Positions 16,392 through 64,000 of a stretch of 64,000 nt of DNA are shown here, piece by piece (positions within the stretch are counted from its first letter, which is position 1; every line of letters starts with the position of its first letter). Location of the stretch: positions 62,001 through 126,000 of the IMG/VR virus record IMGVR_UViG_3300034117_002447, one strand, 5' to 3'. Below the pieces are notes generated by a model. The model was not told where the DNA came from. It ran no database searches and saw only the letters and a program-made list of their open reading frames with translations. A program made the position numbers and the translations under genes.

Positions 16392-16393
16392 CG

Positions 16394-16574: not shown

Positions 16575-16680
16575 TGATTAGAGCCGGACTCGAACCGGAT
16601 ACCGTGCAAGACGGAGTAGACAACCTTACCTCTTTCGAGTTCGGGACTTGGGTACCATCCCGCATTACGCCCATCTAATC
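16575..16680 (-). ncRNA. tRNA-like RNA (GATTAGA acceptor) with non-canonical core
   Basis: 7-bp acceptor GATTAGA/TCTAATC, T arm CCGG-TTCGAGT-CCGG; core has other hairpins and no standard D or anticodon arm. Confidence 0.65.
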
Positions 16681-16685
16681 ATTAG

Positions 16686-16757
<72 letters not shown>

Positions 16758-16762
16758 ATATG

Positions 16763-16833
16763 TTGTCCCGCAAGGATTCGAACCTCGATCTTCTGGACCA
16801 AAACCAGACGTGCTGCCATTACACCACAGGACA
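16763..16833 (-). tRNA. tRNA-Gln(TTG)
   Basis: TCTGG-TTTTGGT-CCAGA; U1:A72. Confidence 0.95.
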
Positions 16834-16930
16834 ATTTTCAATCTCCAATAAGTCAAAGAACTCTTGTTAAACTTATATGATTACTATACCACATTAGGTT
16901 TAATTTAGTCACTTTCTTTCGAAAGATTTG

Positions 16931-17001
16931 CACGGTCGGAGAGATTCGAACTCCCATCTAGGGTTTTGGAGACCCGCATGCTACCATTGCACCACATCCG
17001 T
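16931..17001 (-). tRNA. tRNA-Trp(CCA)
   Basis: Loop CTCCAAA; G73; one acceptor mismatch. Confidence 0.9.
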
Positions 17002-17010
17002 GTATTCTTT

Positions 17011-17088
17011 TGGTTGCGGGACCCGGACTCGAACCGGGAACTTCAGCTTATGAGACTGACGAGATAACCGCTTTCTACGCATCCCGCA
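17011..17088 (-). tRNA. tRNA-Met(CAT)
   Basis: TCAGT-CTCATAA-GCTGA; CCA; irregular D arm. Confidence 0.85.
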
Positions 17089-17093
17089 ATGTT

Positions 17094-17170
17094 TGGTTGG
17101 AATAATAGGAATCGAACCTATAACCTTTCGCGTATCAGGCGAATGCTCTAACCAATTGAGCTATATTCCA
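17094..17170 (-). tRNA. tRNA-Ile(GAT)
   Basis: TTCGC-CTGATAC-GCGAA; CCA. Confidence 0.95.
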
Positions 17171-17176
17171 GTTTAG

Positions 17177-17250
17177 TGTCCCCGACAGGACTCGAACCTG
17201 TGACTCCCTCATTAAAAGTGAGGTGCTCTAACCAACTGAGCTACGAAGAC
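17177..17250 (-). tRNA. tRNA-Lys(TTT)
   Basis: CCTCA-CTTTTAA-TGAGG. Confidence 0.95.
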
Positions 17251-17290
17251 CTGTGTATTTAGACCTGTAACTCTGGGAGTCACTGGGCCT

Positions 17291-17320
17291 TTAGCGTTTA
17301 CGTTTCATATTCTTATTCAT
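17291..17320 (-). CDS. Candidate micro-ORF MNKNMKRKR inside the tRNA array
   Basis: A-rich upstream tract, ATG...TAA, immediately followed by a hairpin. Confidence 0.35.
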   Translation of the reverse strand: MNKNMKRKR

Positions 17321-17328
17321 TTTTTTGT

Positions 17329-17404
17329 TGGTGGTGAGGGGCGGGATCGAACCGCCGACACCAGGATTTTCAGTCCTGTGCTCTACCATCTGAGCTACCT
17401 CACC
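17329..17404 (-). tRNA. tRNA-Phe(GAA), first gene of the array
   Basis: CAGGA-CTGAAAA-TCCTG; CCA. Confidence 0.97.
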
Positions 17405-17409
17405 ATGCT

Positions 17410-17445
17410 AAAACAAAAAACCTCGAATTTTTTAGGTTCGAGGTT
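17410..17445 (-). terminator. Attenuator terminator upstream of the tRNA array
   Basis: AACCTCGAA-CCTAAAAAA-TTCGAGGTT followed by TTTTGTTTT, 5 nt before tRNA-Phe. Confidence 0.85.
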
Positions 17446-17493
17446 CGTTGTTGTTAGTTATGTAATTTCTTAACTTATACCACTAGAACCTCG
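17439..17493 (-). promoter_or_regulatory. Antiterminator (mutually exclusive with the terminator)
   Basis: CGAGGTTC (17493-17486, in the leader ORF) is the perfect complement of GAACCTCG (17446-17439, terminator 5' arm); inner AGTTA/TAACT helix. Confidence 0.75.
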
Positions 17494-17601
17494 CAATACC
17501 CCAAAATCTTTAATCGTCTCCATTGCAATCACATTAACTGTGCCTGCCGGATACTGATTCCAGTTTTGAGTATTTTTTGATATGTTCGTAGTTATTTGCA
17601 C
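17470..17601 (-). CDS. Leader peptide (43 aa) MQITTNISKNTQNWNQYPAGTVNVIAMETIKDFGVLRGSSGIS
   Basis: GTG start after ACAAAAAAATTAAACTC; lies between promoter motifs and the terminator; below the ORF-track cut-off. Confidence 0.75.
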   Translation of the reverse strand: MQITTNISKNTQNWNQYPAGTVNVIAMETIKDFGVLRGSSGIS

Positions 17602-17621
17602 GAGTTTAATTTTTTTGTCTA

Positions 17622-17665
17622 GTTATTTATCTAGTTATTATACCAACTTTTTAAAAAAGGTTTCC
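17622..17665 (-). promoter_or_regulatory. Tandem promoters of the leader/tRNA operon
   Basis: GGAAAC-N16-GTATAAT (17665-17637) plus GATAAATAAC (17631-17622). Confidence 0.65.
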
Positions 17666-17677
17666 CTTTACTAAAAA

Positions 17678-18241
17678 TTACTTTATCATTGCTGCAAGTT
17701 TTTCGTTTGCTTGATCGATCTTAGAGAATTTAGACTCAAAGAAAGACTTTAACTTGGCAACGATTGCTGTGATTTTACCAGACAACCTAGCAACGATCGC
17801 TTTAGCTTTATCAGTTAATTTAGATTCATCTAGTTTTTCAATATCGTATGAGTGTTTTACGTTTGATATTGCTGTGTTTTGTCTAACACATTCGTTGATA
17901 ATTGCTTGAGCAGCAGCATCGACTAACCCTAGTGCCTGCTCTACAGCTTTAGCATAAGATGGGTTTTCAGAAGATCCGCCGTATCTTGAAATCTTGATAA
18001 CGTATTTTTCAGTTGTTGCAAGCTTATCATTTAGGACTTTCATTGCATCAAAGATCGGCTTCATTGTTGCATCAAATGCACCAAGCTCAGTATTGATAGC
18101 TTTTGTTTCAGCTGTCAATTCTTTTAATCGAGTTTTGATTTCGTGAATTCTATCAAGCTTAGCAACGATAGTTTTATCTTTGATTTGAGCTTCGTTAATC
18201 TTTGCTTCGTTAACAAATTGTGTGAATCTTTTAAGTTTCAT
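17678..18241 (-). CDS. Coiled-coil protein with capsid-targeting-like N-terminus
   Basis: MKLKRFTQFVNE; ATAAATAA upstream. Confidence 0.7.
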   Translation of the reverse strand: MKLKRFTQFVNEAKINEAQIKDKTIVAKLDRIHEIKTRLKELTAETKAINTELGAFDATMKPIFDAMKVLNDKLATTEKYVIKISRYGGSSENPSYAKAVEQALGLVDAAAQAIINECVRQNTAISNVKHSYDIEKLDESKLTDKAKAIVARLSGKITAIVAKLKSFFESKFSKIDQANEKLAAMIK

Positions 18242-18267
18242 TTTAAAAAGTAATTTTTGTTTATTTA

Positions 18268-18819
18268 TTAATAACGATCATCGTCGTAATCATCGTAGTC
18301 AGGCTCATCAGGTTCAAAATCCTCAACCGCTCTATCGAGAGCAGAGTCAGTTCTTTTTTTGAAAGTACCAGTTAAATCGACTAGAGTATTTGAATCGTAA
18401 AGAGCTTTGAATTTATTAATGAAGTCCTTGAGCTCTTCTCCTGTAATTTCTTCTTGCTCTGCATCGTATATTAAATCGCCAATTGCTGCATATTCATCAG
18501 CTCCTTCAAATCCCATGCTTTTTAACTCTTCAGCTTCAGGGGAATCTAGCATGGCTTTAACCTGCGAAATTACTGAAGGATCAGTTACTTTATACACTCC
18601 GTCTACTCCATCAAAGTCAACATCATCAACTGAATAGCCGCCAACGAATCCGACACTGCTATCGTCAGGCTCATAATCGAAAGATACGTCTAGTGTAACA
18701 AGCCAAATTATGTAGATTATTTCGTCTATTAAGAATATATTTTCTTCAACTTCAATAACTGACGAAGATTCTGTTATCAAGCTCTCTTTTACAAATTGTG
18801 AAAATCTCTTAAGTTTCAT
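18268..18819 (-). CDS. Acidic protein with capsid-targeting-like N-terminus
   Basis: MKLKRFSQFVKE; ATAAATAA upstream. Confidence 0.7.
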   Translation of the reverse strand: MKLKRFSQFVKESLITESSSVIEVEENIFLIDEIIYIIWLVTLDVSFDYEPDDSSVGFVGGYSVDDVDFDGVDGVYKVTDPSVISQVKAMLDSPEAEELKSMGFEGADEYAAIGDLIYDAEQEEITGEELKDFINKFKALYDSNTLVDLTGTFKKRTDSALDRAVEDFEPDEPDYDDYDDDRY

Positions 18820-18840
18820 TAGGGATCTTATTTTTATTAT

Positions 18841-19098
18841 TTATCCCTTAGTTCTGCCCAAAACTTCTACTGATACAGATACTCCATCTGGATTCTTTCT
18901 AACTCTGATAGTCGCTTCATCGAATCCCCTAATCCACAGTAGATCTTCAAGTACTTCCTGAACATCGTCCGGATAGACTTCCGGATGAACTAGCCCCGGT
19001 TGGTACGGGTCATGTTCTAATTTCTCAGTAAACTCAAGAACGAGACGTTTCATGTCCGCCTCGTTCTTTAGTGCATTTAATATAGAGCCTTTTGCCAT
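18841..19098 (-). CDS. Hypothetical protein
   Basis: Coupled ORF. Confidence 0.6.
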   Translation of the reverse strand: MAKGSILNALKNEADMKRLVLEFTEKLEHDPYQPGLVHPEVYPDDVQEVLEDLLWIRGFDEATIRVRKNPDGVSVSVEVLGRTKG

Positions 19099-19796
19099 TA
19101 CGATACGTATTTTGCAAAGTTAACTGCTGCCTTGTAAGCATCTTCATACGAATGAATTGTCTTAGCACCACGTAGTCTAAAAGGAATATGATCTACTGCC
19201 CAACCAGCAAGGGTCATTTCTTCTTCTGACGCTTTATGGTCAGAGGTACTCTTTGCCCATTCTTCGCACTCTTTATAATACGAGTCCAGGTGCTTGCCGT
19301 AGAACTTTTCGTATTGAGGAAGGTCTTGTTCAGCAGGTTTCCATTTAGCATCAAATAGTTTATCGCCTTTTCCGAATGCACAAGAAGCACGGTGAGAATA
19401 ACCAATCCACTGCTTTGCCTTCTTACTCCATGCAGTATGAGGATGAGATCCCTTTGTTGCTCTGAGGCCATTGTTGTAGTACCACCAACCTTCTTCAATT
19501 GATCCAACGTAAACTCCGTCTGGATTCATGCATGAATTGGGTAATGAGTACTCATCGTCTGGTCCGAACTTATGAACTCCTACCTTTAGCCCAGTAGTTG
19601 CTTCAATTTGTTTAATACATTCAGGATTTACAGCCCAACCTTCCAAATCTCTTTCAGGTCGGATTCGGCTTACTAACTTAGTAAATCCCAGATCCAAGTG
19701 GATCTTATTTAATTTAGTTTTGCCAGTGTAGTGAGGAAATCTCTCGAACTTCAACTGAATTTTGCCAAGGTATGGCGTTTGATTTTTAATTAACAT
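19098..19796 (-). CDS. Hypothetical phage protein
   Basis: WIGYSHRA...FGKGDKLFD motif. Confidence 0.65.
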   Translation of the reverse strand: MLIKNQTPYLGKIQLKFERFPHYTGKTKLNKIHLDLGFTKLVSRIRPERDLEGWAVNPECIKQIEATTGLKVGVHKFGPDDEYSLPNSCMNPDGVYVGSIEEGWWYYNNGLRATKGSHPHTAWSKKAKQWIGYSHRASCAFGKGDKLFDAKWKPAEQDLPQYEKFYGKHLDSYYKECEEWAKSTSDHKASEEEMTLAGWAVDHIPFRLRGAKTIHSYEDAYKAAVNFAKYVS

Positions 19797-19810
19797 ATAC
19801 TGTTATTTTT

Positions 19811-19999
19811 TTAATAAGGATCAACTACCTCATCGACTGCGTCAGATAAGTCTTCGCCGACCGAGTTTATTAAATCCTTTGTTGCGGTAGCTTCGCCACC
19901 GGTTGCCACGTCAACTGCATCCTTTACGACTGCGATTGGTGACAATGCTGTTTTTACTGTTGCGCTTGCTATATTAGCGATTGCTCCGAATAGTCCCAT
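19811..19999 (-). CDS. Hypothetical protein
   Basis: Short amphipathic ORF with A-rich start. Confidence 0.6.
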   Translation of the reverse strand: MGLFGAIANIASATVKTALSPIAVVKDAVDVATGGEATATKDLINSVGEDLSDAVDEVVDPY

Positions 20000-20015
20000 T
20001 GTTTATTGATTTTTT

Positions 20016-20103
20016 TGGCGGAGGATGTAGGATTCGAACCTACGGTACCTTGCGGTACAACAGTTTTCAAGACTGCCGCGATCGACCACTCTGCCAATCC
20101 TCC
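20016..20103 (-). tRNA. tRNA-Ser(TGA)
   Basis: GCAGT-CTTGAAA-ACTGT; long variable arm; G73; CCA. Confidence 0.97.
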
Positions 20104-39768: not shown

Positions 39769-40914
39769 TTAGTCGAAAGAAACTCCGGGAATTGACATTA
39801 ATGTACGACCCATGTCGTTTAGTAGAGTTTGATGATTCGTGTACTTAACGGTTTGGTGCCAGTATGGGGTCTTGGTTTTTGAATTTAAGACTACTGTATT
39901 GCTGGAAAGACCTGCGAACTTCTTTAGATTAGCAGCATTCATGTTAACCTGCTTTGCAACAAGTCTACCGTCTTGATTAACAACCAGACTTGGAGCGCCA
40001 AGTCCAACCATTTTTACTTGCCAACCGTTTCGTTCAACTTCATTAATGTATTCTGCATGAAACGCGAATAGTCTCTTTTGACCCTGAACTTCAGGACCAA
40101 GTACTAGAACGCAACTGCCTTTTCCCATTGAGATATTTTCGTTTACATCAGATGGCTTATCGTCTAGTGAATCGTTTGGTTCAGAATAGATATGGGAATA
40201 TGCATCAGCGCCTAAGTCAATCAATCTCTCAAGGTAACCTTGATTACGCAACTGTTTAAATACTAGATTCTCGATAGAGAACTCACCGTTTGCAGCAAGA
40301 CCCTCTTTACGAGCCTTCATGATTTTCTGTTTAAGAGCAGAGATTCTGTCCTGTACTTCTCTAGCCTGATCTGAATCTGACTTAACTACTTCCTTTTCAA
40401 GTTCCTCAATTTCAGTAATGAATGCCTCTACTTTACGGTAAACATCCTTTTCGTCAATCTGTGGATTACTTGGTTCAGGAACCGTGATCCATTCGTCTTT
40501 CATTAGGGAATATAAACCTGATGCAACGTGTGGTTCGTCCTTGTCTTGTGCATACAATTCAACATCAAAACCTTGGATCTTTACTGGGTGTCTAAGATTC
40601 CAGATAAAACGTAATCCATCAACTGCTTTCTTTACAAGCTCAACGTCATCTCCGATAATAGTAAAGTCTAGAATAACATGGACGTCCAAGTCAGAGTGTT
40701 CTGTCCAGTTAAAGTTAGCTAGAGATCCAGTCAAATGAATGTCTATGATTGGTGCTTCAACTTTTAGGTCAGTATAGAAATCAGTTGCAATCTGCAAAAG
40801 TTTCGTACGAACCTCTGGGTTAAACTTCTGGTCCTGCCAGAATATAGAGTTCAATTCTCCTTTGTAGAATTCTCCCTCATTAAGGAACTGGTTGTATGGT
40901 TTTAAGTGTTTCAT
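39769..40914 (-). CDS. Pol-beta-superfamily nucleotidyltransferase with capsid-targeting-like N-terminus
   Basis: LTGSLANFNW...SDLDVH, DVELY; MKHLKPYNQFLNE. Confidence 0.7.
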   Translation of the reverse strand: MKHLKPYNQFLNEGEFYKGELNSIFWQDQKFNPEVRTKLLQIATDFYTDLKVEAPIIDIHLTGSLANFNWTEHSDLDVHVILDFTIIGDDVELVKKAVDGLRFIWNLRHPVKIQGFDVELYAQDKDEPHVASGLYSLMKDEWITVPEPSNPQIDEKDVYRKVEAFITEIEELEKEVVKSDSDQAREVQDRISALKQKIMKARKEGLAANGEFSIENLVFKQLRNQGYLERLIDLGADAYSHIYSEPNDSLDDKPSDVNENISMGKGSCVLVLGPEVQGQKRLFAFHAEYINEVERNGWQVKMVGLGAPSLVVNQDGRLVAKQVNMNAANLKKFAGLSSNTVVLNSKTKTPYWHQTVKYTNHQTLLNDMGRTLMSIPGVSFD

Positions 40915-55359: not shown

Positions 55360-55485
55360 TAGTCAGGACAGGATTCGAACCTGTATGATAACTTATGAGC
55401 AGTCTTAACGGGTCTTTCGAGGTTACTCACGTTATCCTTACTATTAACCTTTATTCATGCGTCTAACCAATTCCGCCACCTGACT
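55360..55485 (-). ncRNA. tRNA-like RNA (AGTCAGG family, copy 3)
   Basis: Leu-type D arm GCGGAATTGGTTAGACGC; long GATAAC/GTTATC hairpin core; identical 3' 24-mer. Confidence 0.75.
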
Positions 55486-55559: not shown

Positions 55560-55650
55560 TAGTCAGGACAGGATTCGAACCTGTAAGTTTCCGATCGCAA
55601 CGATACCATATCCTATTTTTGGAGTCGAACCAACTTTAAGCCACCTGACT
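55560..55650 (-). ncRNA. tRNA-like RNA (AGTCAGG family, copy 4) with a second T-loop hairpin
   Basis: TTGG-TTCGACT-CCAA where the D arm should be; identical 3' 24-mer. Confidence 0.7.
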
Positions 55651-55699
55651 ATAGAGTCTATTATACCCAATGGGTCCAGGCCCGGGCCATGGGTACGTT

Positions 55700-56150
55700 T
55701 GCGTCCCAAAGCTTAGAGGCGCGCCCTACTACTCTAAGAAATTATACTACTCTAAGAAGAAACTCTATAGGCAAGACTCTGTCTACTTATATACATAAAA
55801 AGAAAAATAACGGGTATACCAGACCCTATACCCAACCCTATTCAGAACCCTATCCTATAGACCCAGACCTAGACTAGCCAAGACCAAGGTACCGGACTCT
55901 TACCTAGGCCAGGACCCGGACCCCAGCCTGCCCAGCCAACCACCGGCCTACTCGGGACTAGGGAGTACAGGCAGCTGGCAGCGCCCAAAGGATACAGACT
56001 GTGCATTTATGGGGACTAGGGAGTAACCCCTGCCTCGGCTCCGCGGCCCGACCGGAAGCCCCAGAGTCTAGAGGGGCCCGAGTAGGCGGGGTCTAGCCGG
56101 AAACCGCGGGAACCCGGGCCCGTGGACTTCTCGACCAGCAGCTGGGTACC
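55700..56150. other. Non-coding, strand-skewed, partly GC-rich region (candidate origin/terminus/packaging site)
   Basis: Direct repeat ACTACTCTAAGAA x2, CCC tracts, divergent gene orientation, first ACTAGGGAGT copies. Confidence 0.45.
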
Positions 56151-56165
56151 CGGATAAATAACCCC

Positions 56166-56804
56166 ATGGAACAGGAACAAACACAAGAACTAAGACCCTT
56201 CCCTAGCGGGGAACTCATGTACAAGAAGCAGGCCGCGGAATTCCTAGGGGTTTCGTTGAAGACTCTAGAAGGTTACGTAGCCCAGGGCCGGGTGGATAAG
56301 TGGAAGAACTCTATAAACGGGCGGACCTACTACGACAAGCAGCAGCTACTCTACCTACTAGGGAGTAGACTACCTCAAACTCGAGAGGTGATAGTATACT
56401 GCCGGGCGGCTGGAATCCCGGACCAGGGCAAGGCCGGTGTCTCTAGCCAGAAGCGGCTGCAGGCTCAGCAGGACAGGGTCCTAGAGTACTGTACCCGGGC
56501 CGGGATCAGGGTAGACCAGGTTATAGGGGATATCGGTAAGGCCGGTAGCCTAGAAGGTAGGGGCGGATTCGACAAGATTATGGAGTCTGTCCTGCGCAAG
56601 CGGGTCTCGATGGTTGTTATGGAAACCCCGGACCGGATGGCTCGTTTTGCTGGTGCAGATCTATTCGAGAGATTCCTAACCTGGCACGGTGTTGAATTAC
56701 ATGTTATACAAAAAACCCTGCACAGACAAGAGTACAGGGACGAGATTAAAGACGACCTTACTAACCTTATACTTGAGGCCAGGAATCTGATGGGGGAATT
56801 GTAA
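56166..56804 (+). CDS. IS607 TnpA-like protein (MerR-type HTH + serine-recombinase domain) with disrupted active-site motif
   Basis: AAEFLGVSLKTL HTH; VYCR-[AAGIPDQGKAG]-VSSQK; DRMARF; no tnpB. Confidence 0.75.
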   Translation: MEQEQTQELRPFPSGELMYKKQAAEFLGVSLKTLEGYVAQGRVDKWKNSINGRTYYDKQQLLYLLGSRLPQTREVIVYCRAAGIPDQGKAGVSSQKRLQAQQDRVLEYCTRAGIRVDQVIGDIGKAGSLEGRGGFDKIMESVLRKRVSMVVMETPDRMARFAGADLFERFLTWHGVELHVIQKTLHRQEYRDEIKDDLTNLILEARNLMGEL

Positions 56805-57276
56805 TCCGGACCTCTTCGCCTACAGTAGAGAGACTGAAGCCTGATGGGCTAAGGTTACCATAGTACTCCAGGTAGTATTGCGTCCGTGGACTACTCATTT
56901 CATCCTGAGTCTCCACCACTGGTTCGCTATAGATTGCTTCATCCCTTCTGCCCCATTCACGTAGTAGGACTGCAGCTTTAGAATTAGCTTCATTCTCCAG
57001 GTCTGACCCATCCGAACCATCCATCTGCTGGCCCAACTCGCGCTGGCGCCAATGTACCAATTCATGGGCTAGGGTCCGGTACCAGTCAGCTGCTACCCGG
57101 AGTCCGCGTAGTACCCAGATCTGGTTATCCACTGGTGTATAGTAACCCATAGCTCGGACCTGCTTGGCCTTGTTATGGTCGTCGCCTATGCTGATATTGG
57201 GGCTGGTCTCGATCTCCAGTTCTTCTATACAGAATCTGATAAAATCAAGATCCTCTGCTGCTAATTCCTTTTTCAT
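56767..57276 (-). CDS. HEXXH metallopeptidase-like protein
   Basis: RTLAHELVHWRQ...ENEAN. Confidence 0.7.
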   Translation of the reverse strand: MKKELAAEDLDFIRFCIEELEIETSPNISIGDDHNKAKQVRAMGYYTPVDNQIWVLRGLRVAADWYRTLAHELVHWRQRELGQQMDGSDGSDLENEANSKAAVLLREWGRRDEAIYSEPVVETQDEMSSPRTQYYLEYYGNLSPSGFSLSTVGEEVRITIPPSDSWPQV

Positions 57277-57405
57277 AAGGTTATTTATTTCCGGCGGTTG
57301 AAGGTTACTGTGCGCGAAAACCCCTCGAGCTGGGGTAGGGTCCAGAACCCATGCCGGGACTGCACGGATTTTGGGATTAAATAATAAGAAAATATAATAT
57401 CACTG

Positions 57406-57549
57406 ATGGCTAAAGCAAAAGCGGGAGCTACCGGTTCTGTACACAGACCGAGCTCTAAACGTAAACGTCCGGGCGTGCATGCAAAGAGCAAGAGCTCTCG
57501 CAGCAAGGCGGCTAAGAACTACCTTAAGAGATCAGTTGGTCAGGGGTAA
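57406..57549 (+). CDS. Small basic protein (47 aa), not in ORF track
   Basis: MAKAKAGATGSVHRPSSKRKRPGVHAKSKSSRSKAAKNYLKRSVGQG; TAAATAA upstream, terminator downstream. Confidence 0.7.
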   Translation: MAKAKAGATGSVHRPSSKRKRPGVHAKSKSSRSKAAKNYLKRSVGQG

Positions 57550-57579
57550 TGGGACTAGGGAGTGATCCCTATTCACACA

Positions 57580-57609
57580 AAAAAGGGGTCCCTTCTGAGG
57601 ACCCCTTTT
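57580..57609. terminator. Bidirectional terminator
   Basis: AAAAGGGGTCC-CTTCTGA-GGACCCCTTTT between convergent genes. Confidence 0.85.
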
Positions 57610-57635
57610 AGGGTAGTCATAGTTGTATTTAGTGT

Positions 57636-58754
57636 TTAGATTTGAGCTAATCCTGCGTGCTCAAGGTCCCATGTTTTAGTGAAGAGGCTTCCACCCGCTA
57701 CCTTGAAGTTTTTATTGTTCTTCAGGTCGAAGATTGTATCGTGACTTCCAATCCATGTCAACTCGTTAACAACGTCCCAGATAGTTGCATCAGTCTTGAT
57801 GAACTTCTTTTGAGCATCGGTCAACTGCATAGAGTTAAAGCCTGCACGGAAGATTCGTTTGGTTGCCGCATCGTACTCTGGAAAGAATTGTTCCTCAGCT
57901 CCACGTACTAATTTAGCGTGCATATCGAAATTTTTATTATCGATAGCTCCAGTTACCGAGTGTAGAGCTCGCTCAACTTCGGCGTAGCTTGCTTTGGTTA
58001 CCATTGCTCGCTCCAATCTGTCTTGGAAAGTTTTAGGTACGAACCCGGTCTTGGCCCAACCATTCATTTGGTCTAGCAACTTGCGGAAAGCATCGTCGCC
58101 GTTTCCAAACTCGAACGCAGTGTTTAGGTTTCTAGCGACTGCACCGTTTGCGCATGACAGACGGTAGAAGAAATCGTCCACTCGACTTGCGGTTCCGGTA
58201 TTTACCAAGGATACTCCGAATCTGAAGACCTCGTCCTTACCGATTCTCTCGTAGCCAACTTGGCTGCCGTGGATAAGGTTTATACTTACTCCGCCTGGCC
58301 CGTTGTTGTCGATTGACTCGATATGCATGTCCGGGATTTCATTCATCATGGTCTCGGCTGTCGCGAATAGAGTCTCATTAGACAATCTATTGTACTTATC
58401 AGCTCGGACAATATTGGTTACCTGATGGCTTCCAGCGTCTCCGATAAGAAGGAACTCTTTTGCTCCGTCTCTGGTTTCTGAATAAGACTTTATAGTCTGC
58501 AACAACTTGGTCTCAATATCCTTGTCCTCGTTCTTGTTCATCTTATTGATTAGGCCGGCGTTAAGGTTAACCATTTGACCTAGTCTATTAAAGAACTTGT
58601 TGGACACAGGGACACGTGAACCCTCTATCTCGATAGAGTTGTGTTTGATTGAATTGTCGTTAAGGACAATATCAGATAATTTTACGCGTTTCACTAGTGG
58701 ATTGTTTCCTGCTAGGTCCGCTTTGGCTTGATCGAATTGCGATTGACTTATCAT
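57636..58754 (-). CDS. DUF932-like phage protein
   Basis: YNRLSN, FGVSLVN, FYRLSCANG, WDVVNELT. Confidence 0.6.
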   Translation of the reverse strand: MISQSQFDQAKADLAGNNPLVKRVKLSDIVLNDNSIKHNSIEIEGSRVPVSNKFFNRLGQMVNLNAGLINKMNKNEDKDIETKLLQTIKSYSETRDGAKEFLLIGDAGSHQVTNIVRADKYNRLSNETLFATAETMMNEIPDMHIESIDNNGPGGVSINLIHGSQVGYERIGKDEVFRFGVSLVNTGTASRVDDFFYRLSCANGAVARNLNTAFEFGNGDDAFRKLLDQMNGWAKTGFVPKTFQDRLERAMVTKASYAEVERALHSVTGAIDNKNFDMHAKLVRGAEEQFFPEYDAATKRIFRAGFNSMQLTDAQKKFIKTDATIWDVVNELTWIGSHDTIFDLKNNKNFKVAGGSLFTKTWDLEHAGLAQI

Positions 58755-58809
58755 TTTCTATTTGTTTTTTATAAGATTAATATACTAAATTTTCTTCAAC
58801 AGTTTCCGA

Positions 58810-59943
58810 CTATTCTACTTCAGTTGCGGTCGGGGTCTCGTCAGTTGCTGGGCGTTTTACGCTTAGGAAAAGATTGTTGAACTCTCCTTCCAATCGTTGA
58901 CGGCGGTCAGACTCTTGTTCCGCAAGATCTGCTACAACATTCTCCTGTCTCCATGCGTTCTCGTCCCATTTAACCTCTCCGTCTACTAGGGAGTAGTACA
59001 ATCGCTTGCCGACTAGGCTACCTCCACGGCGGTTCTTTGTAAATTCAGCGTAGCGGCGGCCGGCTTCGTCCTTGCGGATTTCCATCATGCTTGTGGTTGC
59101 GTGTTTGAGGTAGGTCGAGCCTACGTACTGTCCGCCTTTAGTCATGTGTTGGATTGCAAAGATTGCTTTTCCTTTCTTGTCCGCAGCTTCGATGATGAGG
59201 TTAGTTAACCATGTCTCGGCTTTGGTACTCTTCCAGCCTAGAACATCTTTCAGCTTTACAATAATGTCTTGGTGCGAGTCGATTAGGATTACGTCGTAGT
59301 CTCCGTTGATTGCCTTCTCCAAGGTCTTGTCGAAACGACCCATTAGATAATCCATAATCAAGAGGGTTGGGATTGTCTCGATGATCGGCATCTTTCTGTA
59401 ATAGAAGTAAAGATCGTTACGTGTCATTTCACTTGAGATGTAGAGGACCTTCGCATCCGGTTGCTTCTGTTTAATCTTAGCTAAGAGGTCTAATGTAATA
59501 GTTGACTTACCAACTCCCGACTCTCCGATAACAATATTGGCAGTACCAGCGAATACTCCTCCTTCTTCGTCATGGTCAGACATTAACTTGTCGAACACAG
59601 ATCCAGTTAAGAACTTCTTGAAGTCTGGAAAATCCATTGCTCCAATCTCGAAGATCTCTGGCTCGTCGCTGATCTCAACGTCTGCGTCTGCTTGGGCTTC
59701 GGCGGTTGGACGTGCGACAGTGCTTTGGCCTGGACCGGGGACTAGGGAGTCTCCCGTCTCGAAGCGTAGTTTCTTAATTACGCCGTTAAATAATCCGTAT
59801 GATATTCCTGTGCAGTCAGCTTCTTGCGTCATGAACTGCGTGTACAGTTGCTGTACGGTTAGGTTAGGAACTCGGCCGTTGTGGTGGCGCTCGAAGAAGT
59901 TTCTAACAGTTAACTCTTTTTTTCCGATTTTAAGTTCTTGCAT
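58810..59943 (-). CDS. RadA/Sms-like RecA-family ATPase
   Basis: GESGVGKST, VLYISSEM, ILIDS, HMTKGGQYVGSTYLKH, KNRRG. Confidence 0.8.
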   Translation of the reverse strand: MQELKIGKKELTVRNFFERHHNGRVPNLTVQQLYTQFMTQEADCTGISYGLFNGVIKKLRFETGDSLVPGPGQSTVARPTAEAQADADVEISDEPEIFEIGAMDFPDFKKFLTGSVFDKLMSDHDEEGGVFAGTANIVIGESGVGKSTITLDLLAKIKQKQPDAKVLYISSEMTRNDLYFYYRKMPIIETIPTLLIMDYLMGRFDKTLEKAINGDYDVILIDSHQDIIVKLKDVLGWKSTKAETWLTNLIIEAADKKGKAIFAIQHMTKGGQYVGSTYLKHATTSMMEIRKDEAGRRYAEFTKNRRGGSLVGKRLYYSLVDGEVKWDENAWRQENVVADLAEQESDRRQRLEGEFNNLFLSVKRPATDETPTATEVE

Positions 59944-60009
59944 AATTATTTTGGTTTGATTGTTTATACTAATGTACTACAGTTTTATCTATTTGGGCTA
60001 CAGTTTTCT

Positions 60010-60177
60010 CTAAAAATAGAGGAACTCTACAGCCTCAGCGAATTCAAACATTCCTTGATCTTCGAACATTGTGTAGGCTCCGTCTGCGTCAGACATTGCG
60101 ACTACCTCCATTACTTGGAATACGACGTCCTCGCCGAATAATTCCTTTGCTTCGTCTATTGCTTCTTGTGTTGCCAT
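60010..60177 (-). CDS. Small acidic protein (55 aa), not in ORF track
   Basis: MATQEAIDEAKELFGEDVVFQVMEVVAMSDADGAYTMFEDQGMFEFAEAVEFLYF. Confidence 0.65.
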   Translation of the reverse strand: MATQEAIDEAKELFGEDVVFQVMEVVAMSDADGAYTMFEDQGMFEFAEAVEFLYF

Positions 60178-60190
60178 GATCCTTTTGGTT

Positions 60191-60448
60191 TTAGTGGTTA
60201 ATAAAGAATTGAGTTTCTACTTTAGCGCTTCTCCAATCTCCCGCTAAGAGATCCCAGAACACGATTACAGATGGTGGCGTTTCTCGTACGCCCTGTGGGT
60301 GTTTATCCGCGGGGATGTGGTTCAAATTAGTGGTTCCCATTACTTCTCTTAGGGATCCATCTTTCTTTACGAAGAAGAACTTCGTGATTGCTACGTGGAG
60401 TCTTTGTTTTAAAACTTCCGGTGTGATTGGCTGAAATGATGTCTGCAT
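60191..60448 (-). CDS. SH3-beta-barrel (WYL-like) phage protein
   Basis: FVKKDGSLREVMGT, FWDL...WRS. Confidence 0.75.
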   Translation of the reverse strand: MQTSFQPITPEVLKQRLHVAITKFFFVKKDGSLREVMGTTNLNHIPADKHPQGVRETPPSVIVFWDLLAGDWRSAKVETQFFINH

Positions 60449-60550
60449 ATTGGTTTGTTTTTAATTGATTAATATAGTACAAATATAAGCAGAAACTTTG
60501 ACACTAAAAAATTATTTGTGAATTATTTTTAAAAAAAGTTATTAACAATT
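60449..60550 (-). promoter_or_regulatory. Repeated early-promoter cassette (Bacteroidota TAnnTTTG type), copy 1
   Basis: AATTGTTAATAACTTT...TATATTTG...TATATTAATCAATTAAAAACAAACC-ATG. Confidence 0.7.
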
Positions 60551-60698
60551 GAGTGTTCATAACTTCTGGGTACCACGTAGGTCGGAGTCTACCCTCTGCG
60601 CTTGTTAGGCGAACCGTTTAATTATAGAGTAAATATACAAAAAAAACCCCGAATCTAAAAAATCCGGGGTTAATTATTTTCGGGAAAGTTATTAACAA

Positions 60699-60911
60699 TT
60701 AGTGGGCTGGTATTTCAAGTTCGTGGTCTCCGACCTTTACTGTTTGGCCTATGAACTCTCGACTTGAACCCATCTTTACACGACCGCCGTACTCGAAGTC
60801 TAGGTCTATGTCTGCTTTGGATTTGGAAAGAATCTTTATCATTTCCTTTGGGTCTTTAACGCAGGTCTCTTGACCTTTTGTTTCGATGTATAACCTTAGA
60901 ATCTCTTTCAT
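60699..60911 (-). CDS. Hypothetical protein
   Basis: ORF with A-rich start. Confidence 0.55.
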   Translation of the reverse strand: MKEILRLYIETKGQETCVKDPKEMIKILSKSKADIDLDFEYGGRVKMGSSREFIGQTVKVGDHELEIPAH

Positions 60912-60953
60912 AAGAATTAATTATTTGATTATATTTAACCGAGAAAAGAACCC

Positions 60954-61343
60954 CTATCCGAGGTTCTCTAATTGTTGACGTTGATCTTGGGTTAAAGAAT
61001 CAATTCCGTTTTTCGAGATGAGGTCTAACAACTCGTCCATTGTATAGACTCTTTCGGTCTCGTGAGGAGTTGGAGTTGAGGTCCCCATTGCTTTGTGGAT
61101 TACTTGTATAAGTTCTTCCGGTAACTCGATATTGATATCGTTGAATCGAGCTAAGATGAAGAACGCTCCGGTCTCCTTGATGTCATCGCATACCCGATCC
61201 AAATTAGAATCTGTATTGAATACTGAAAGGATCGCGCCTGGGACAGGAACGGCAACTGCTTGACCAACGATGTGTGGTGCTAATGCTCTTGATACTACTG
61301 GACTTGGTGCTTGTCCGAATCTAACTAAAACTAATTTTTCCAT
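60954..61343 (-). CDS. Hypothetical protein
   Basis: C-terminal MDELLDLISKNGIDSLT (DUF6576-like). Confidence 0.6.
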   Translation of the reverse strand: MEKLVLVRFGQAPSPVVSRALAPHIVGQAVAVPVPGAILSVFNTDSNLDRVCDDIKETGAFFILARFNDINIELPEELIQVIHKAMGTSTPTPHETERVYTMDELLDLISKNGIDSLTQDQRQQLENLG

Positions 61344-61442
61344 GGTTTGTTTTTTAATTGATTAATATAGAGTAAATATAAAAAGAATCTTTGAGACTAA
61401 AAAACTTTTTCACAATTATTTTCAACTAAAGTTATTAACAAT
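61344..61442 (-). promoter_or_regulatory. Repeated early-promoter cassette, copy 2
   Basis: Near-identical to 60449-60550. Confidence 0.7.
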
Positions 61443-61448
61443 TTGAAG

Positions 61449-61757
61449 TTAAGCGGACGGTCCGCCAGGAGAAGAGGTCGTAGTAGGAGGAGCAGCGGTC
61501 GTAGTTGTTGTCGTAGCCGCCGTGTTGAGATCGTTGATAGACGCAATACCGGTTCCACTGTTCATAGCTGTCTCGAGCAAGGTCAGCTTGGCCAACGCGT
61601 CGGCCGGGCTGGGCGTTACGAAGTCTATTGTGTATCCGCCGACAAGAGCAATACGGATATTGTTTTCTCCAGAATTATATTCAATTACCTGAACCTGGGC
61701 TGGGGTAAACTCTAGAATTCGGGTACCCATTGTAAGTTTAATTAATGCAACTGCCAT
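61449..61757 (-). CDS. Hypothetical protein with Thr/Pro-rich tail
   Basis: TTTTTTAAPPTTT. Confidence 0.6.
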   Translation of the reverse strand: MAVALIKLTMGTRILEFTPAQVQVIEYNSGENNIRIALVGGYTIDFVTPSPADALAKLTLLETAMNSGTGIASINDLNTAATTTTTTAAPPTTTSSPGGPSA

Positions 61758-61936
61758 TTGTAATAAGTATTATCTTTTATATCTTATACTAAGAAACCAG
61801 AAAAGGGCTCCTTTCGAGAACCCTTTCTTTATCAACTGATCAAACCAATAATCAATTATTAATATTCTTCTTTCTTGAAATTGTACAGGATAGCTACTAT
61901 AACTAGGATTCCTGCTAGGATACACATTGGCATAGG

Positions 61937-62206
61937 TTAGTGGTTTACGGGTTTATAGGTTGGATCTAATTCGTCAGCTAACTTCTTCAAGTCAGCGCAT
62001 TTCTCGAACTCTTCGTTCTTCTCAAAATGTTTTATCATAGTCCATATTGCTTGAGTCTTATCTTCAACTGGACTCTTATCATGTATTACATCTTTAAATT
62101 CTCCAGTCAAGGCTTCGTACAAGCGATTCATAAAGGCCGAGTAATCCGTCTGTCTTAGATGGATGAGGTCCAATAGAATCTTTGTATAATTATTTAAGTC
62201 TGACAT
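61937..62206 (-). CDS. Hypothetical protein (UVR-like C-terminus)
   Basis: FEKNEEFEKCADLK. Confidence 0.6.
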   Translation of the reverse strand: MSDLNNYTKILLDLIHLRQTDYSAFMNRLYEALTGEFKDVIHDKSPVEDKTQAIWTMIKHFEKNEEFEKCADLKKLADELDPTYKPVNH

Positions 62207-62295
62207 AACCTTTTTATTTATTTTGGCTATATCTATTATACTAAAAAAGGGGTCAAAGATTCTCGCCTTGACCCCTTTAGTTAAAAGATGGATTA

Positions 62296-62556
62296 TTATT
62301 GTTCAGTTAAACACTCTTTGCATAGACTCGAGAACTCGTTAATACTCTGTGTAAAGTACGGTCCGTCGAATCCGTTTCGCTTGGCAATGATTGCGTTCCA
62401 AAGCGGTTCGGATTCCGTATGGTAATTGACATCTTCAAAAGAATCGTGCAATTTTTCCAAGTCTTCTAGAGAAGTATCCACTGTTACTTCCGAGCCAGCC
62501 TTTAGCATTCCGTCGTAGTCGAAGTTGTGCGACCATTTGTTTCCTAATTTATACAT
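62296..62556 (-). CDS. Hypothetical protein
   Basis: ORF with A-rich start. Confidence 0.6.
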   Translation of the reverse strand: MYKLGNKWSHNFDYDGMLKAGSEVTVDTSLEDLEKLHDSFEDVNYHTESEPLWNAIIAKRNGFDGPYFTQSINEFSSLCKECLTEQ

Positions 62557-62574
62557 GGTTTTAGATTTTAAATA

Positions 62575-62790
62575 TTAGTTACTGTTTTTCTTGGCATTTT
62601 CCAGACAGGCTTGGAACTCTTCTTCGGTTAAGAAGTCTGAATCTTCTATAACCAGCTTCTTTAAGGTTGCTGCCTGGATCTCTTTTACTAGGGAGTCCTT
62701 ATCTACCTTACCTTTAAATAGATCTCCTTCTGCAAAGAGTATATCTACCGCCATCTCGGCCATGGTACTTGCGTGTTCCATTGTTAGCAT
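62575..62790 (-). CDS. Hypothetical protein
   Basis: Coupled to the sigma gene. Confidence 0.55.
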   Translation of the reverse strand: MLTMEHASTMAEMAVDILFAEGDLFKGKVDKDSLVKEIQAATLKKLVIEDSDFLTEEEFQACLENAKKNSN

Positions 62791-63512
62791 GATACTACCT
62801 CCTTTCTCATTTGCGCTCTAGCAACTTTAAGAGAACGATTTACTTCTGATGGAGTCTTACCAATTAACTCTGCAATTTCTTTTGTTGATAATCCATCGCC
62901 AACCAATCCATAAAATAACTCTACGATTTGGCGATCGCTTGCTTTTAATTTGCCAAGTAATCGGGCAAGAATCATGTCTCTCTCTTGGTTCTCGAATGGA
63001 TCAGCGAAATCGGTCTTAAGAATCAAGTCGCCGATTGTTGTTGCACTGTCCTCGTCCCCGACTGGTTTGTCAATCGCAACGTTAGTAAGATTGATTTCTT
63101 CGCCTTTCATTTTACGTTTGTAAAGATCGTATTCCTGATTTACTGGAATTCTAACGGTTCTTCCCAAGTCGCAAAGAGCAAGGTTAAGACGCTTGCGAAT
63201 CCAGAACTGAGCGTAAGTAATAAACTTAACATCTTTGTCTGACGTAAACTTGCGAGCGGCTTCGATTAGACCAGCGTTTCCTTCTTGGATGAGGTCATCG
63301 ATTGGCAGACCCATACCAATAAACTTGTTGGCTAAGGTTACAACGAACTTAAGGTTCGCGGTGACTAGGGAGTTAAGCGCTTCGTCATCTCCTAACTGGA
63401 TTCTGTCAGCTAACGCTCCTTCTTCGCATTTACTTAACGGTCTAGCCAATCCGTCCAGGCTTTTAAAGTATTGGGGTAGTCCCGCACTTGTTTCGAATCT
63501 TGTATTTTTCAT
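62784..63512 (-). CDS. RNA polymerase sigma-70 factor, RpoD/RpoS-like
   Basis: LVTANLKFVV, DLIQEGNAGL, KFITYAQFWIR, RTVRIP; start moved to MKNTRF. Confidence 0.92.
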   Translation of the reverse strand: MKNTRFETSAGLPQYFKSLDGLARPLSKCEEGALADRIQLGDDEALNSLVTANLKFVVTLANKFIGMGLPIDDLIQEGNAGLIEAARKFTSDKDVKFITYAQFWIRKRLNLALCDLGRTVRIPVNQEYDLYKRKMKGEEINLTNVAIDKPVGDEDSATTIGDLILKTDFADPFENQERDMILARLLGKLKASDRQIVELFYGLVGDGLSTKEIAELIGKTPSEVNRSLKVARAQMRKEVVSC

Positions 63513-63600
63513 GGTTTGATTTTTTAATTGATTAATATGATACAAATATAAAAAGAATAATTGATATAAAAAAATATTTTATGACTTATTTTTAAAAAGT
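63513..63600 (-). promoter_or_regulatory. Repeated early-promoter cassette, copy 3
   Basis: TATATTTG...ATATTAATCAATTAAAAAATCAAACC-ATG. Confidence 0.7.
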
Positions 63601-63612
63601 TTTACTAGGGAG

Positions 63613-64000
63613 TTAAGCAGCTACTTCCTCTTGGCTGTTTCGGACGAACGCTTTGTCTGCCCAAGTCTTAGCGTTACACAGTCTGTAATTAGTTTGACTG
63701 TATAGATTACTATTAGACCAGTCCTGATTGATATCGCCTACCTCCATTTCAAGAAACATTGCAGTATCCATTAGGATTATCGTGTTACCTTTGCGGGCGA
63801 AGACAGTTAACCATGTATTAAAGCCTTCCGCTCTGAACTCGATGGTTTGTAAAGCTCCCTTCTTGAATCCGCGGAAAACATCCATTGCTGTCTTCCAGCT
63901 TGCGCCGCTAGACCATTTAGACTGGATTCCATGGTCGTTTACTACCGTCATGAATCCGGCCTGAACTTTAACGATTGCGCGGTATTCGCCTGCTTGACCT
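63613..64000 (-). CDS. Hypothetical protein, 5' end beyond the window
   Basis: Frame remains open upstream of the ATG at 63951 to the window edge. Confidence 0.6.
   Translation of the reverse strand, partial: GQAGEYRAIVKVQAGFMTVVNDHGIQSKWSSGASWKTAMDVFRGFKKGALQTIEFRAEGFNTWLTVFARKGNTIILMDTAMFLEMEVGDINQDWSNSNLYSQTNYRLCNAKTWADKAFVRNSQEEVAA

Follow-up and report, generated by a model that had tools for sequence, protein, structure and literature searches.

IS607-family transposases (TnpA) combine an N-terminal MerR/Xis-like HTH with a serine-recombinase catalytic domain that carries its catalytic serine in a YCRVSS motif, and their elements are mobile, often multi-copy and usually followed by tnpB. 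In IS1535, TnpA nucleates on four 9-bp direct repeats upstream of tnpA and spreads (PMC6188088). BldC binds direct repeats as multimers (PMC5859096), and BldC/Xis-type winged-helix proteins load on asymmetric direct repeats head-to-tail. Polar protein-DNA barriers (Tus-Ter, RTP-Ter, TTF-I Sal-box arrays and the Fob1 RFB) use asymmetric sites repeated in one orientation over a region, with back-up copies and a stronger cluster at one edge; Fob1 is described as derived from an integrase-like protein. The T5 injection stop signal (iss) comprises eight DnaA boxes in the untranslated end of the pre-early region, whereas Chi, KOPS and DNA uptake sequences (DUS) are short, exact, oriented words that are highly over-represented across the host chromosome. 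Here, we compare with these systems a one-stranded 10-mer that tags the early-gene segment of a family of uncultured freshwater jumbo phages.

We analyzed a stretch of 64,000 nucleotides (the window), corresponding to bases 174116-238115 of a 270,136-bp IMG/VR phage record. The original prediction described nine exact copies of ACTAGGGAGT in this window, all on the + strand and five of them within genes, and we confirmed this observation. Shuffled sequences gave 0.08 expected copies, and the window held no 1-mismatch variants. To examine whether the word is spread evenly over both strands genome-wide, which had been set beforehand as a refuting outcome, we searched the whole record and found 10 copies, all on the + strand, within 230072-238259; the tenth lies 135 bases past the window end. 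The codon usage described in the original prediction also held: in the four minus-strand cases the motif is read x-S-L-V with TCC CTA, whereas SLV in 39769..40914 is encoded by AGT CTG GTT. The non-coding stretch 55651-56165, described as skewed, is only mildly so (GC skew -0.10; A 141, T 88).

Table 1 Features of the motif region in window coordinates.
Position	Strand	Feature	Observations
55957..56024	+	Two motif copies 58 bp apart (55957-55966 and 56015-56024) in non-coding, GC-rich DNA	Proximal copy 151 bp upstream of the recombinase-like ATG; relatives carry 1-5 copies here with a 56-58 bp period and unrelated spacers
56166..56804	+	IS607-TnpA-like gene (HTH_17 plus serine-recombinase catalytic fold) without the canonical YCRVSS serine	Single copy in the genome; candidate reader of the motif
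56357..56366	+	Motif copy inside the recombinase-like gene, read L-G-S	At +191 from the ATG; in-gene site at +182..+221 in clade A (a subclade has a pair at +236/+293) and at +192/+195 in most of clade B, in a different reading frame
56767..57276	-	Zincin-like metallopeptidase gene of the conserved GC-rich core	Weak Pfam hits; orthologues in 16 loci
57406..57549	+	Conserved 47-aa, very basic ORF	Ends 4 nt before motif copy 4; orthologue cluster 13+; called as a 44-aa gene in ENA contigs; no Pfam match
57554..57563	+	Intergenic motif copy	Next to a bidirectional terminator-like hairpin
57636..58754	-	DUF932-like gene (372 aa) of the conserved core	Most abundant RNA contig of the region in lake metatranscriptomes
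58810..59943	-	Rad51/RadA-like ATPase gene: N-terminal three-helix domain, disordered linker and RecA core	Motif copies at 58985-58994 (YSLV) and 59741-59750 (DSLV, in the linker)
62687..62696	+	Motif copy inside the 71-aa early gene 62575..62790 (DSLV)	Position kept in the loci L022/L027
63364..63373	+	Motif copy inside the phage sigma-factor gene 62784..63545 (NSLV)	Position kept in the locus L017
63604..63613	+	Motif copy abutting the stop codon of the next minus-strand gene	Directly upstream of an early-promoter block; other copies of this block have ATTGTTAATAAC at the same place

Next, we examined whether the word is conserved in related phages. It was kept, one-stranded and confined to 11-22 kb, in every related phage record examined (64 forward, 0 reverse), with counts of 12:0, 8:0, 12:0, 10:0 and 12:0 in five records of the same clade (clade A). 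A deeper sister clade (clade B) uses ACTACGGAGT, which differs by one base, in the same way (64:1), with counts of 15:0, 15:0, 14:0, 13:1 and 7:0 in five records, spanning 8-27 kb (two of the spans are cut short by contig ends).

To investigate whether selection acts on the nucleotides, we compared codon columns in 8 orthologues of the Rad51/RadA-like gene. Of 91 degenerate codon columns with an invariant amino acid, only 4 had an invariant codon, and 3 of those were the motif (TCC-CTA-GTA). Moreover, in a variable linker the peptide x-SLV appeared only where the motif is present. These results, together with the flank statistics below and conservation across diverged relatives, demonstrate the DNA-level selection that the original prediction had proposed.

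The flanks of the word extend it to a 14-bp pseudo-dyad with an asymmetric centre, as expected for a double-stranded protein-binding site. A occurs 0/118 and 2/118 times at -1 and -2, and +1/+2 are mostly A/C, although clade A also has frequent G at +2. The avoidance of A at -1/-2 and of T at +1/+2 recurs in 61 clade-B sites, and nothing is conserved beyond -2/+2.

We then asked whether the word belongs to a described class of element. It is not an early-promoter element: early promoters are a separate repeated block carrying TAnnTTTG, the Bacteroidota -7 element, a second promoter class, TTTAGTATAATA, is genome-wide with 26 copies, and the 10-mer is part of neither. The motif region (genome 230.07-238.26 kb) only partly overlaps the early-promoter region (234.6-242.4 kb), with which the original prediction had it overlapping. 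A T7-like RNA-polymerase promoter did not fit either, since the conserved roughly 20-bp upstream specificity region is lacking and nearly all genes lie on the opposite strand; a search for a single-subunit RNAP gene (PF00940) gave no hit, a weak point because the control genomes gave none either. A host word of the Chi or KOPS type is contradicted by 6 hits in 20 Bacteroidota genomes (about 55 Mb) against 40 for the reversed control, the host itself being inferred, and the MAG that holds a phage contig has 2 hits outside that contig. The locus is also not a CRISPR array, which has repeats of 23 nt or more with regular spacing, as the repeat is 10 nt, spacing outside the array is irregular and no cas-like genes were found in profile searches.

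Sites were densest around the IS607-TnpA-like gene, the HTH protein gene that the original prediction had named as its first candidate. They bracket its start codon at about -130 to -150 and +190 to +220 in both clades: sites lie at -124..-151 in five of six clade-A genomes with an upstream site and six of seven clade-B genomes, and at +182..+221 in both clades, although the proteins are only 30-34% identical. Pfam and PHROG searches placed HTH_17 at residues 21-63 and Resolvase at 94-188. The IS607 TnpA model NF033518 aligned over residues 21-202 with 90.7 bits, below its curated equivalog cut-off of 110. The AlphaFold model matched the catalytic-domain fold of ISC1926, ISC1904 and IS1535 TnpA (6dgc, 3ilx, 3lhk and 6dgb; TM by target 0.61-0.78), and its N-terminal domain matched BldC (TM by target 0.73-0.75). 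The canonical nucleophile, however, is missing in most of the family. In the window protein YCR is followed by AAGIPDQGKAG before VSS, R+2 is Ala in 63 of 68 clade-A homologues, 18 of 68 have no Ser/Thr at any candidate position, and all 7 clade-B proteins have A/P/N/D/G at R+2. The next gene is the minus-strand metallopeptidase gene rather than tnpB, and the neighbourhood is the same in relatives down to 30% identity.

Taken together, our best reading, which remains tentative, is that ACTAGGGAGT is the invariant core of a 14-bp double-stranded protein-binding site with weakly symmetric flanks (not-A not-A on the left, A/C A/C on the right) and arms ACT/AGT around an asymmetric centre A[G/C]GG, which gives it a direction. 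The sites would be polar docking sites marking the distal part of the early segment, and their most likely reader is the exapted, probably non-catalytic TnpA-like protein encoded at the end of that segment. By analogy with IS1535 TnpA and BldC, which load head-to-tail on 9-bp-scale direct repeats, this protein would nucleate on each site in one orientation, with the densest loading on the sites that bracket its own start codon, which suggests autoregulation or looping, and would thereby mark the segment as a unit. Because orientation is kept without exception in clade A, the bound sites probably act on something directional; a polar roadblock or boundary for transcription or replication entering or leaving the early segment, or parallel synapsis of the sites, are the candidates. 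Our analysis establishes the motif, its polarity and confinement, the nucleotide-level selection, the dyad flanks, the association with the gene and the loss of the serine, whereas binding itself, the identity of the reader and any effect of binding, including a barrier activity, are inferred from sequence and predicted structure alone. Co-orientation with the gene could be a by-product of conserved synteny, and any other conserved protein of the core, namely the 47-aa basic ORF, the Rad51/RadA-like N-terminal domain or the DUF932-like protein, could be the reader. Furthermore, the motif differs by only one base between clades whose DNA-binding domains have diverged strongly, and one clade-A array holds both variants, so there is no clean covariation. 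The spacing of the sites (hundreds of bp to kb; 57-58 bp in arrays) is also unlike the 10-11 bp phasing on IS1535 ends. The original interpretation was thus partly supported: oriented binding sites is the best reading, but its proposed roles in replication initiation, packaging or DNA entry are not supported by any result obtained here.

A bolder reading, compatible with these data but unlikely, is that a domesticated, catalytically dead IS607 transposase has become the reader of a strand-polar address code that delimits and controls the early segment of jumbo-phage chromosomes. It would be a phage counterpart of Tus-Ter, Fob1-RFB or the T5 injection stop, a polar boundary for transcription, replication or DNA transfer, whose code has drifted by one base between sister clades.

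Among the alternatives, an RNA-level signal survives best, although we consider it unlikely. In this view the complement ACUCCCUAGU, carried by the leftward early transcripts, would be a processing, decay or termination signal between cistrons, resembling the RNase III sites of the T7 early region or the RegB sites of T4. Polarity matches the direction of all early genes, and 31 of 60 clade-A sites and 41 of 62 clade-B sites lie outside ORFs of at least 60 codons on either strand, although such minus-strand ORFs cover 75% and 69% of the region. In addition, 18 and 17 sites, respectively, overlap or follow a stop codon of a minus-strand gene within 60 nt, an enrichment that counts against our preferred reading. 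One metatranscriptome contig ends inside the 58985 copy, and no run covers 58750-58990. However, these are undirected contigs of relatives about 93% identical, and about 0.6 contig ends in motifs are expected by chance against 2 seen. Moreover, dyad-symmetric flank constraints are not expected for single-stranded RNA, copies at fixed distances around the start of the + strand recombinase-like gene would be antisense, the 2-5 copy array lies beyond the last early gene, and conserved in-frame copies inside the RecA-like and sigma genes would destroy those mRNAs.

A replication or recombination element is somewhat less likely. The sites would be loading or priming sites (iteron-like, or phage-specific recombination hotspots) for the adjacent Rad51/RadA-like ATPase, making the array an origin-like locus with unidirectional firing. 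This RecA-fold ATPase with its N-terminal helical domain lies 2.5 kb away, and the linker site, one of its two conserved sites, is kept in both clades. A tandem array next to dispersed copies recalls P4 ori/crr and P1 incC/incA. In contrast, there is no AT-rich unwinding element in the GC-rich array, the 57-58 bp period is absent in clade B, cumulative GC and AT skews follow gene strand only and give no origin or terminus signal near the array, and no initiator family was recognised.

A DNA-entry or packaging landmark, in which the array would be an injection-stop or packaging-series boundary and the polar copies would be read by a translocating machine, is also unlikely. The array is non-coding and sits at the inner end of the early segment, which is 3-10% of the genome, like the T5 first-step-transfer DNA (10.1101/866236), and strict polarity suits a translocase. 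However, no information on termini backs this reading, four near-identical assemblies are rotated relative to one another, as expected for a circular assembly, and many sites lie inside genes far from any boundary. The reader would also have to be a virion or host protein, yet the word is rare in candidate host genomes.

Least likely are active site-specific recombination sites, at which the serine-recombinase-like protein would exchange DNA at the central GG or CG so that circles integrate and excise in an integron-like manner, leaving directly repeated sites between early-gene cassettes: inverted arms around an asymmetric centre are the anatomy of a serine-recombinase crossover site, the clade-A centre is GG as at IS607 ends (PMC6188088), all sites are direct repeats, many lie at gene boundaries, early-gene order differs between relatives and one relocated gene is flanked by two sites in this genome, but, besides the missing nucleophile, 23-38% of sites lie inside ORFs at conserved positions, four near-identical genomes and five contigs sharing one recombinase allele show identical site spacing and so no sign of ongoing exchange, the relocated gene is not flanked by sites in the relatives, and the repeated 100-bp promoter blocks can explain the shuffling.

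If our reading is right, this is a clear case of a transposase exapted by a virus into a sequence-specific organiser of part of its own chromosome, with a cis code readable straight from the sequence that can orient any phage of this lineage. These lake phages are abundant and probably infect Flavobacteriia-type hosts, and the motif, the two promoter classes and the early-region map give a first handle on their infection programme. Even if the reader turns out to be another protein, a 10-bp word held invariant and one-stranded through more than 50% protein divergence is an unusually strong cis-element signal.

Compared with the IS607 family (IS1535, IS607 and ISC1926), the locus shares the domain order, the catalytic-domain fold and a short (9-10 bp) directly repeated word clustered upstream of the gene and co-oriented with it, whose binding by the protein is inferred by analogy. 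It differs in its syntenic gene and in sites spaced 57 bp to several kb apart over 8-27 kb instead of 10-11 bp apart within 60 bp of an element end, and we found no evidence of mobility. Head-to-tail loading, as by BldC, would explain why a site has a direction, but BldC sites are adjacent repeats at promoters rather than kilobase-spaced sites over a genome segment, and here the BldC-like domain is fused to a recombinase fold. The polar barriers resemble the locus only in anatomy (asymmetric sites, one orientation, an edge cluster), with no sequence or fold relation to their proteins. Like the T5 iss, the array is a cluster of short boxes in untranslated DNA at the inner end of the (pre-)early region of a large lytic phage; T5, however, uses host DnaA boxes in a terminal repeat, whereas this word is phage-lineage-specific and also dispersed through genes. 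Finally, Chi, KOPS and DNA uptake sequences are likewise short, exact and oriented, but this word is under-represented in Bacteroidota genomes and confined to one phage segment.

We first examined how the 10-mer is distributed in the window and in the rest of the genome. ACTAGGGAGT occurs nine times in the window, always on the + strand, against 0.08 copies expected from dinucleotide shuffles, and allowing one mismatch adds no further sites. In the 270,136-bp IMG/VR virus record, judged complete, of which the window forms bases 174116-238115, there are ten copies, all on the + strand, and none on the other strand. An even spread over both strands had been named beforehand as the outcome that would count against the motif, and this was not what we found. 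Apart from the tRNA T-loop word, it is the only repeated 10-mer that is not AT-rich outside one repeat-rich gene. The original prediction stated that five copies lie in genes, that those in minus-strand genes are always read x-S-L-V with TCC CTA codons, and that the SLV of another gene is encoded differently. Each of these details holds: five copies lie in genes, the four in minus-strand genes are read as TCC CTA GTx, and the other SLV uses AGT CTG GTT. Overall, the observation is real and stronger than first reported.

Features of the motif region and of the surrounding genome (window coordinates unless marked otherwise)
Feature	Position	Strand	Description
ACTAGGGAGT, nine copies in the window (start positions)	55957, 56015, 56357, 57554, 58985, 59741, 62687, 63364, 63604	+	
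ACTAGGGAGT, all ten copies in the whole record	genome 230072-238259	+	
IS607-TnpA-like gene	56166..56804	+	HTH_17 plus Resolvase
Zincin-like peptidase gene	56767..57276	-	
Conserved 47-aa basic ORF	57406..57549	+	Lysine/arginine-rich; ends 4 nt before a motif copy; no family match
DUF932-like gene	57636..58754	-	
Rad51/RadA-like ATPase gene	58810..59943	-	Matched by AAA_25
WYL_2 gene	60191-60448		Moves between relatives
Sigma-factor gene (sigma-70 family)	62784..63545	-	253 aa; early region
Second sigma-70-family gene	genome 240933-241931		332 aa; early region, beyond the window
146-aa gene	63613-64000 (gene runs to 64053)		Follows the sigma gene here
Gene with differently encoded SLV	39769..40914		AGT CTG GTT
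GC-rich island	55650-59950		45-51% GC in a 38% genome
Early-promoter block of about 100 bp	60449-60550, 61342-61443, 63512-63613; five more copies up to genome 242.4 kb	- (as read)	Eight copies, all leftward, at genome 234.6-242.4 kb
Second promoter-like word, TTTAGTATAATA	genome-wide, e.g. 58775-58790, 62230-62245	oriented with the genes	26 copies with at most 1 mismatch
Two tRNA genes with insertions	55360-55485 and 55560-55650	-	126 and 91 nt; Rfam 37.2 and 30.9 bits
Cluster of 19 tRNA genes	14446-20103	-	
tRNA-Leu	462-542		
Repeat-rich coding stretch	genome 39.6-52.5 kb		Outside the window
Mixed array in a clade-A relative	L067:222-290		One ACTAGGGAGT and one ACTACGGAGT, 58 bp apart

Around and after the first two copies, the conserved core (recombinase-like, peptidase, DUF932-like and Rad51/RadA-like genes) lies in a GC-rich island, followed by small minus-strand genes that include a sigma factor. 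The 47-aa ORF is called as a gene in independent assemblies, and its product is an alternative candidate DNA-binding partner. The Rad51/RadA-like protein has the predicted layout of Rad51 and archaeal RadA, with an N-terminal helical domain, a flexible linker, a RecA core and a long C-terminal helix, and matches bacterial RadA helicase best over the core (rmsd 3.5-4.1 Å). The two tRNA genes next to the array were missed by ARAGORN and found by Rfam, and their lengths show that they carry insertions. RNA contigs from three metatranscriptomes skip 76-78 nt here (55387/9 to 55466), which means either an excised intervening sequence or matches to insert-free tRNAs of other organisms. In the repeat-rich coding stretch outside the window, words such as GTTCCAGAAG recur about 100 times on one strand, as in a Pro/Glu/Val-rich repeat protein.

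Two promoter classes are visible in this genome. The first, the repeated block that marks the early region, carries a palindromic ATTGTTAATAAC element, TTTTTTAGTGTCAA and the Bacteroidota-type -7 element TAnnTTTG, with no Shine-Dalgarno sequence before the ATG, and it points to a Bacteroidota host and to early transcription by the host RNAP. The second, TTTAGTATAATA, lies 35-45 nt upstream of start codons and is possibly read by the phage sigma factor, whose region 2 is RpoD-like. The 10-mer belongs to neither class. The motif region overlaps only the distal half of the early-promoter region and then runs on through the GC-rich core to the array.

We next searched IMG/VR for two copies of the word 30-60 nt apart, which returned 25 loci, three of them unrelated tandem repeats (L010, L019 and L026). 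In the true relatives (clade A, which includes the window), proteins are 44-86% identical to those of the window, while the 10-mer is invariant. Whole-record counts, forward to reverse relative to the array, are 12:0, 8:0, 12:0, 10:0 and 12:0, each within 11-22 kb of records 87-253 kb long. Four near-identical 270-kb assemblies have the same ten sites at rotated coordinates, which indicates a circular assembly. The array of 1-5 copies, with a 56-58 bp period and unrelated GC-rich spacers, always lies at one extreme, next to or, in one subclade, inside the recombinase-like gene. A scan for motif pairs over genome contigs gave 26 hits against about 34 expected by chance, and 25 of these are ordinary tandem repeats that happen to contain the word; only L039, a 254-kb phage contig binned in a Bacteroidetes MAG, is a family member. 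A search of the literature for the word hit only papers that print the Widom 601 nucleosome sequence. The genome itself is present at full word share in lake DNA runs (X1-X18).

A search with an alignment of the RecA-like protein reached a sister clade (clade B), in which the RecA-like protein is 48-54% identical and the recombinase-like protein 30-34% identical, with the same gene order. That clade has no ACTAGGGAGT. Instead, it has ACTACGGAGT, again co-oriented with the recombinase-like gene, with whole-record counts of 15:0, 15:0, 14:0, 13:1 and 7:0 over spans of 8-27 kb, two of them cut short by contig ends. One clade-A array (in relative L067) holds one copy of each variant, and in clade B TCTACGGAGT also occurs 12 times on the same strand, so positions 1 and 5 tolerate change in some lineages. 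A 484-kb uncultured phage with a 33%-identical RecA-like gene has neither the recombinase-like gene nor any comparable polar word in 40 kb, which serves as a weak negative control. As a lead only, the lineage may correspond to the recently described 'moraphages', which are freshwater phages of 200-307 kb with predicted Bacteroidota hosts and a sigma factor among the core genes; that paper mentions neither a recombinase nor a transposase (PMC12619734).

To determine the level at which selection acts, we compared codons in eight RecA-like orthologues (60-86% identical). Of 91 codon columns with an invariant, 4- or 6-fold degenerate amino acid, only four keep a single codon, and three of those four are the consecutive TCC-CTA-GTA of the motif. 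The second copy in that gene lies in a disordered, indel-rich linker (pLDDT below 50), where the only conserved peptide is x-SLV, and only in genomes that have the motif. In the recombinase-like gene the in-gene site is read L-G-S in clade A and T-T-E in clade B, so that it sits at a different place in the protein but at nearly the same distance from the ATG. The constraint is therefore on nucleotides.

Over 118 unique clade-A contexts, nothing is conserved beyond two bases on each side of the word. Position -1 is never A and position -2 almost never (2 of 118), whereas +1 is A or C in 102 of 118 and +2 is mostly C or G with few T. The 61 clade-B sites show the same avoidance of A on the left and of T on the right. 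Together with the arms ACT/AGT, this gives a 14-bp pseudo-dyad whose centre, A[G/C]GG, is asymmetric. Mirror-symmetric flank constraints fit a double-stranded site read by two similar DNA-binding domains, and the invariant asymmetric centre supplies direction.

We then asked which protein might read the site. In both clades, the greatest density of sites is at the 5' end of the recombinase-like gene. A site lies at -124 to -151 in five of the six clade-A genomes that have an upstream site and in six of seven clade-B genomes, and another lies at +182 to +221 in clade A or at +192/+195 in five of seven clade-B genomes, so that the sites bracket the start codon with 325-365 bp between them. The protein has the IS607 TnpA domain order, and its predicted structure superposes on the catalytic domains of ISC1926, ISC1904, MJ0014 and IS1535 TnpA (TM by target 0.61-0.78), while its N-terminal domain superposes on BldC. 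IS1535 TnpA nucleates cooperatively on four 9-bp direct repeats upstream of tnpA and then spreads along the DNA (PMC6188088), and BldC binds direct repeats as cooperative multimers (PMC5859096). A monomeric winged helix of this type reads an asymmetric word, which would account for the polarity of each site. These points make the gene product the best candidate reader of duplexes carrying GGACTAGGGAGTAC, although binding is inferred from sequence, predicted structure and analogy alone.

The protein is probably not an active recombinase. Its gene is single-copy, is syntenic down to 30% identity and has no tnpB partner. In clade A the YCR motif of the family is followed by Ala-Ala and an 11-residue insertion; R+2 is Ala in 63 of 68 homologues, and 18 of 68 have no Ser/Thr at any of the four candidate positions. 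All seven clade-B proteins have A, P, N, D or G at R+2, and two have also lost the Asp of the DRLAR motif. Site spacing is identical among near-identical genomes and among contigs sharing one recombinase allele, with no rearrangement between sites. We therefore read the protein as an exapted DNA-binding derivative of a transposase, although residual or shifted catalysis is not excluded.

Signs of exchange at the sites were also sought in the gene order of relatives. Early genes are shuffled: in a comparison with L072 and L067, the 146-aa gene sits after the sigma gene here but between other genes in two relatives, and the WYL_2 gene and others also move. Homology with some relatives starts or ends at a site, and one relocated gene is flanked by sites in this genome. 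However, divergence is 65-75%, and the repeated promoter blocks offer a simpler cause, recombination between them being a likely origin of the shuffling. Contig ends gave no pattern that would indicate termini or recombination, as one ENA contig starts inside a motif and others break at an unrelated 17-mer repeat.

An RNA-level role, in which the word would act as ACUCCCUAGU, remains possible. Sites are 2-3-fold enriched outside ORFs and often sit just after stop codons, which may point to such a role or may merely reflect the cost of encoding the word, which contains TAG on the gene strand. Metatranscriptome contigs show that the DUF932-like and RecA-like genes are expressed, but these contigs are undirected, come from relatives about 93% identical, and are too coarse to decide this question and uninformative for the array. 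Other readings were ruled out. A host Chi, KOPS or uptake word is excluded by rarity, with 6 hits in about 55 Mb of Bacteroidota genomes against 40 for the reversed control. A T7-like promoter, suggested by the resemblance to ...ACTATAGGGAGA, is excluded because there is no conserved upstream region and the genes lie on the other strand; the lack of a PF00940 hit is only weak support, as control genomes gave no hit either. A hairpin formed by ACT/AGT plus flanks fails because the flanks are not consistently complementary, a skew-defined origin or terminus because GC and AT skews follow gene strand only, and a CRISPR-like array is likewise excluded.

The original interpretation, that these are oriented binding sites under DNA-level selection, tied to replication initiation, packaging or DNA entry and overlapping the early-promoter region, was partly supported: DNA-level selection holds and oriented binding sites are the best reading, whereas no result obtained here supports the proposed functions and the overlap with the early-promoter region is only partial. 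The analysis establishes a lineage-wide, strand-polar cis code under nucleotide-level selection, tied to a degenerate IS607-TnpA-like gene; that the product of this gene binds the sites, that it has lost catalysis, and what the marking does are inferred. The last of these is the weakest part of the analysis. The absence of exceptions to orientation (128:1 over ten whole records of distinct phages from the two clades) argues for a directional process rather than simple repression. The array is at the far (left) edge of the leftward early transcription, and beyond it lie two tRNA genes and genes with the second promoter class. The left neighbours of the array differ between relatives, whereas the right side is conserved.

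Oriented protein-binding words and TnpA direct repeats are both known, and the code described here is a variant of these with a possibly new function. A polar boundary or roadblock, with the array as the strong edge and the dispersed copies as back-ups, would fit this anatomy and has analogues in Ter sites, Sal-box arrays, replication fork barriers and the T5 iss. Parallel synapsis of the sites by TnpA-like dimers, as in the IS1535 paired-end complex, would fit equally well.
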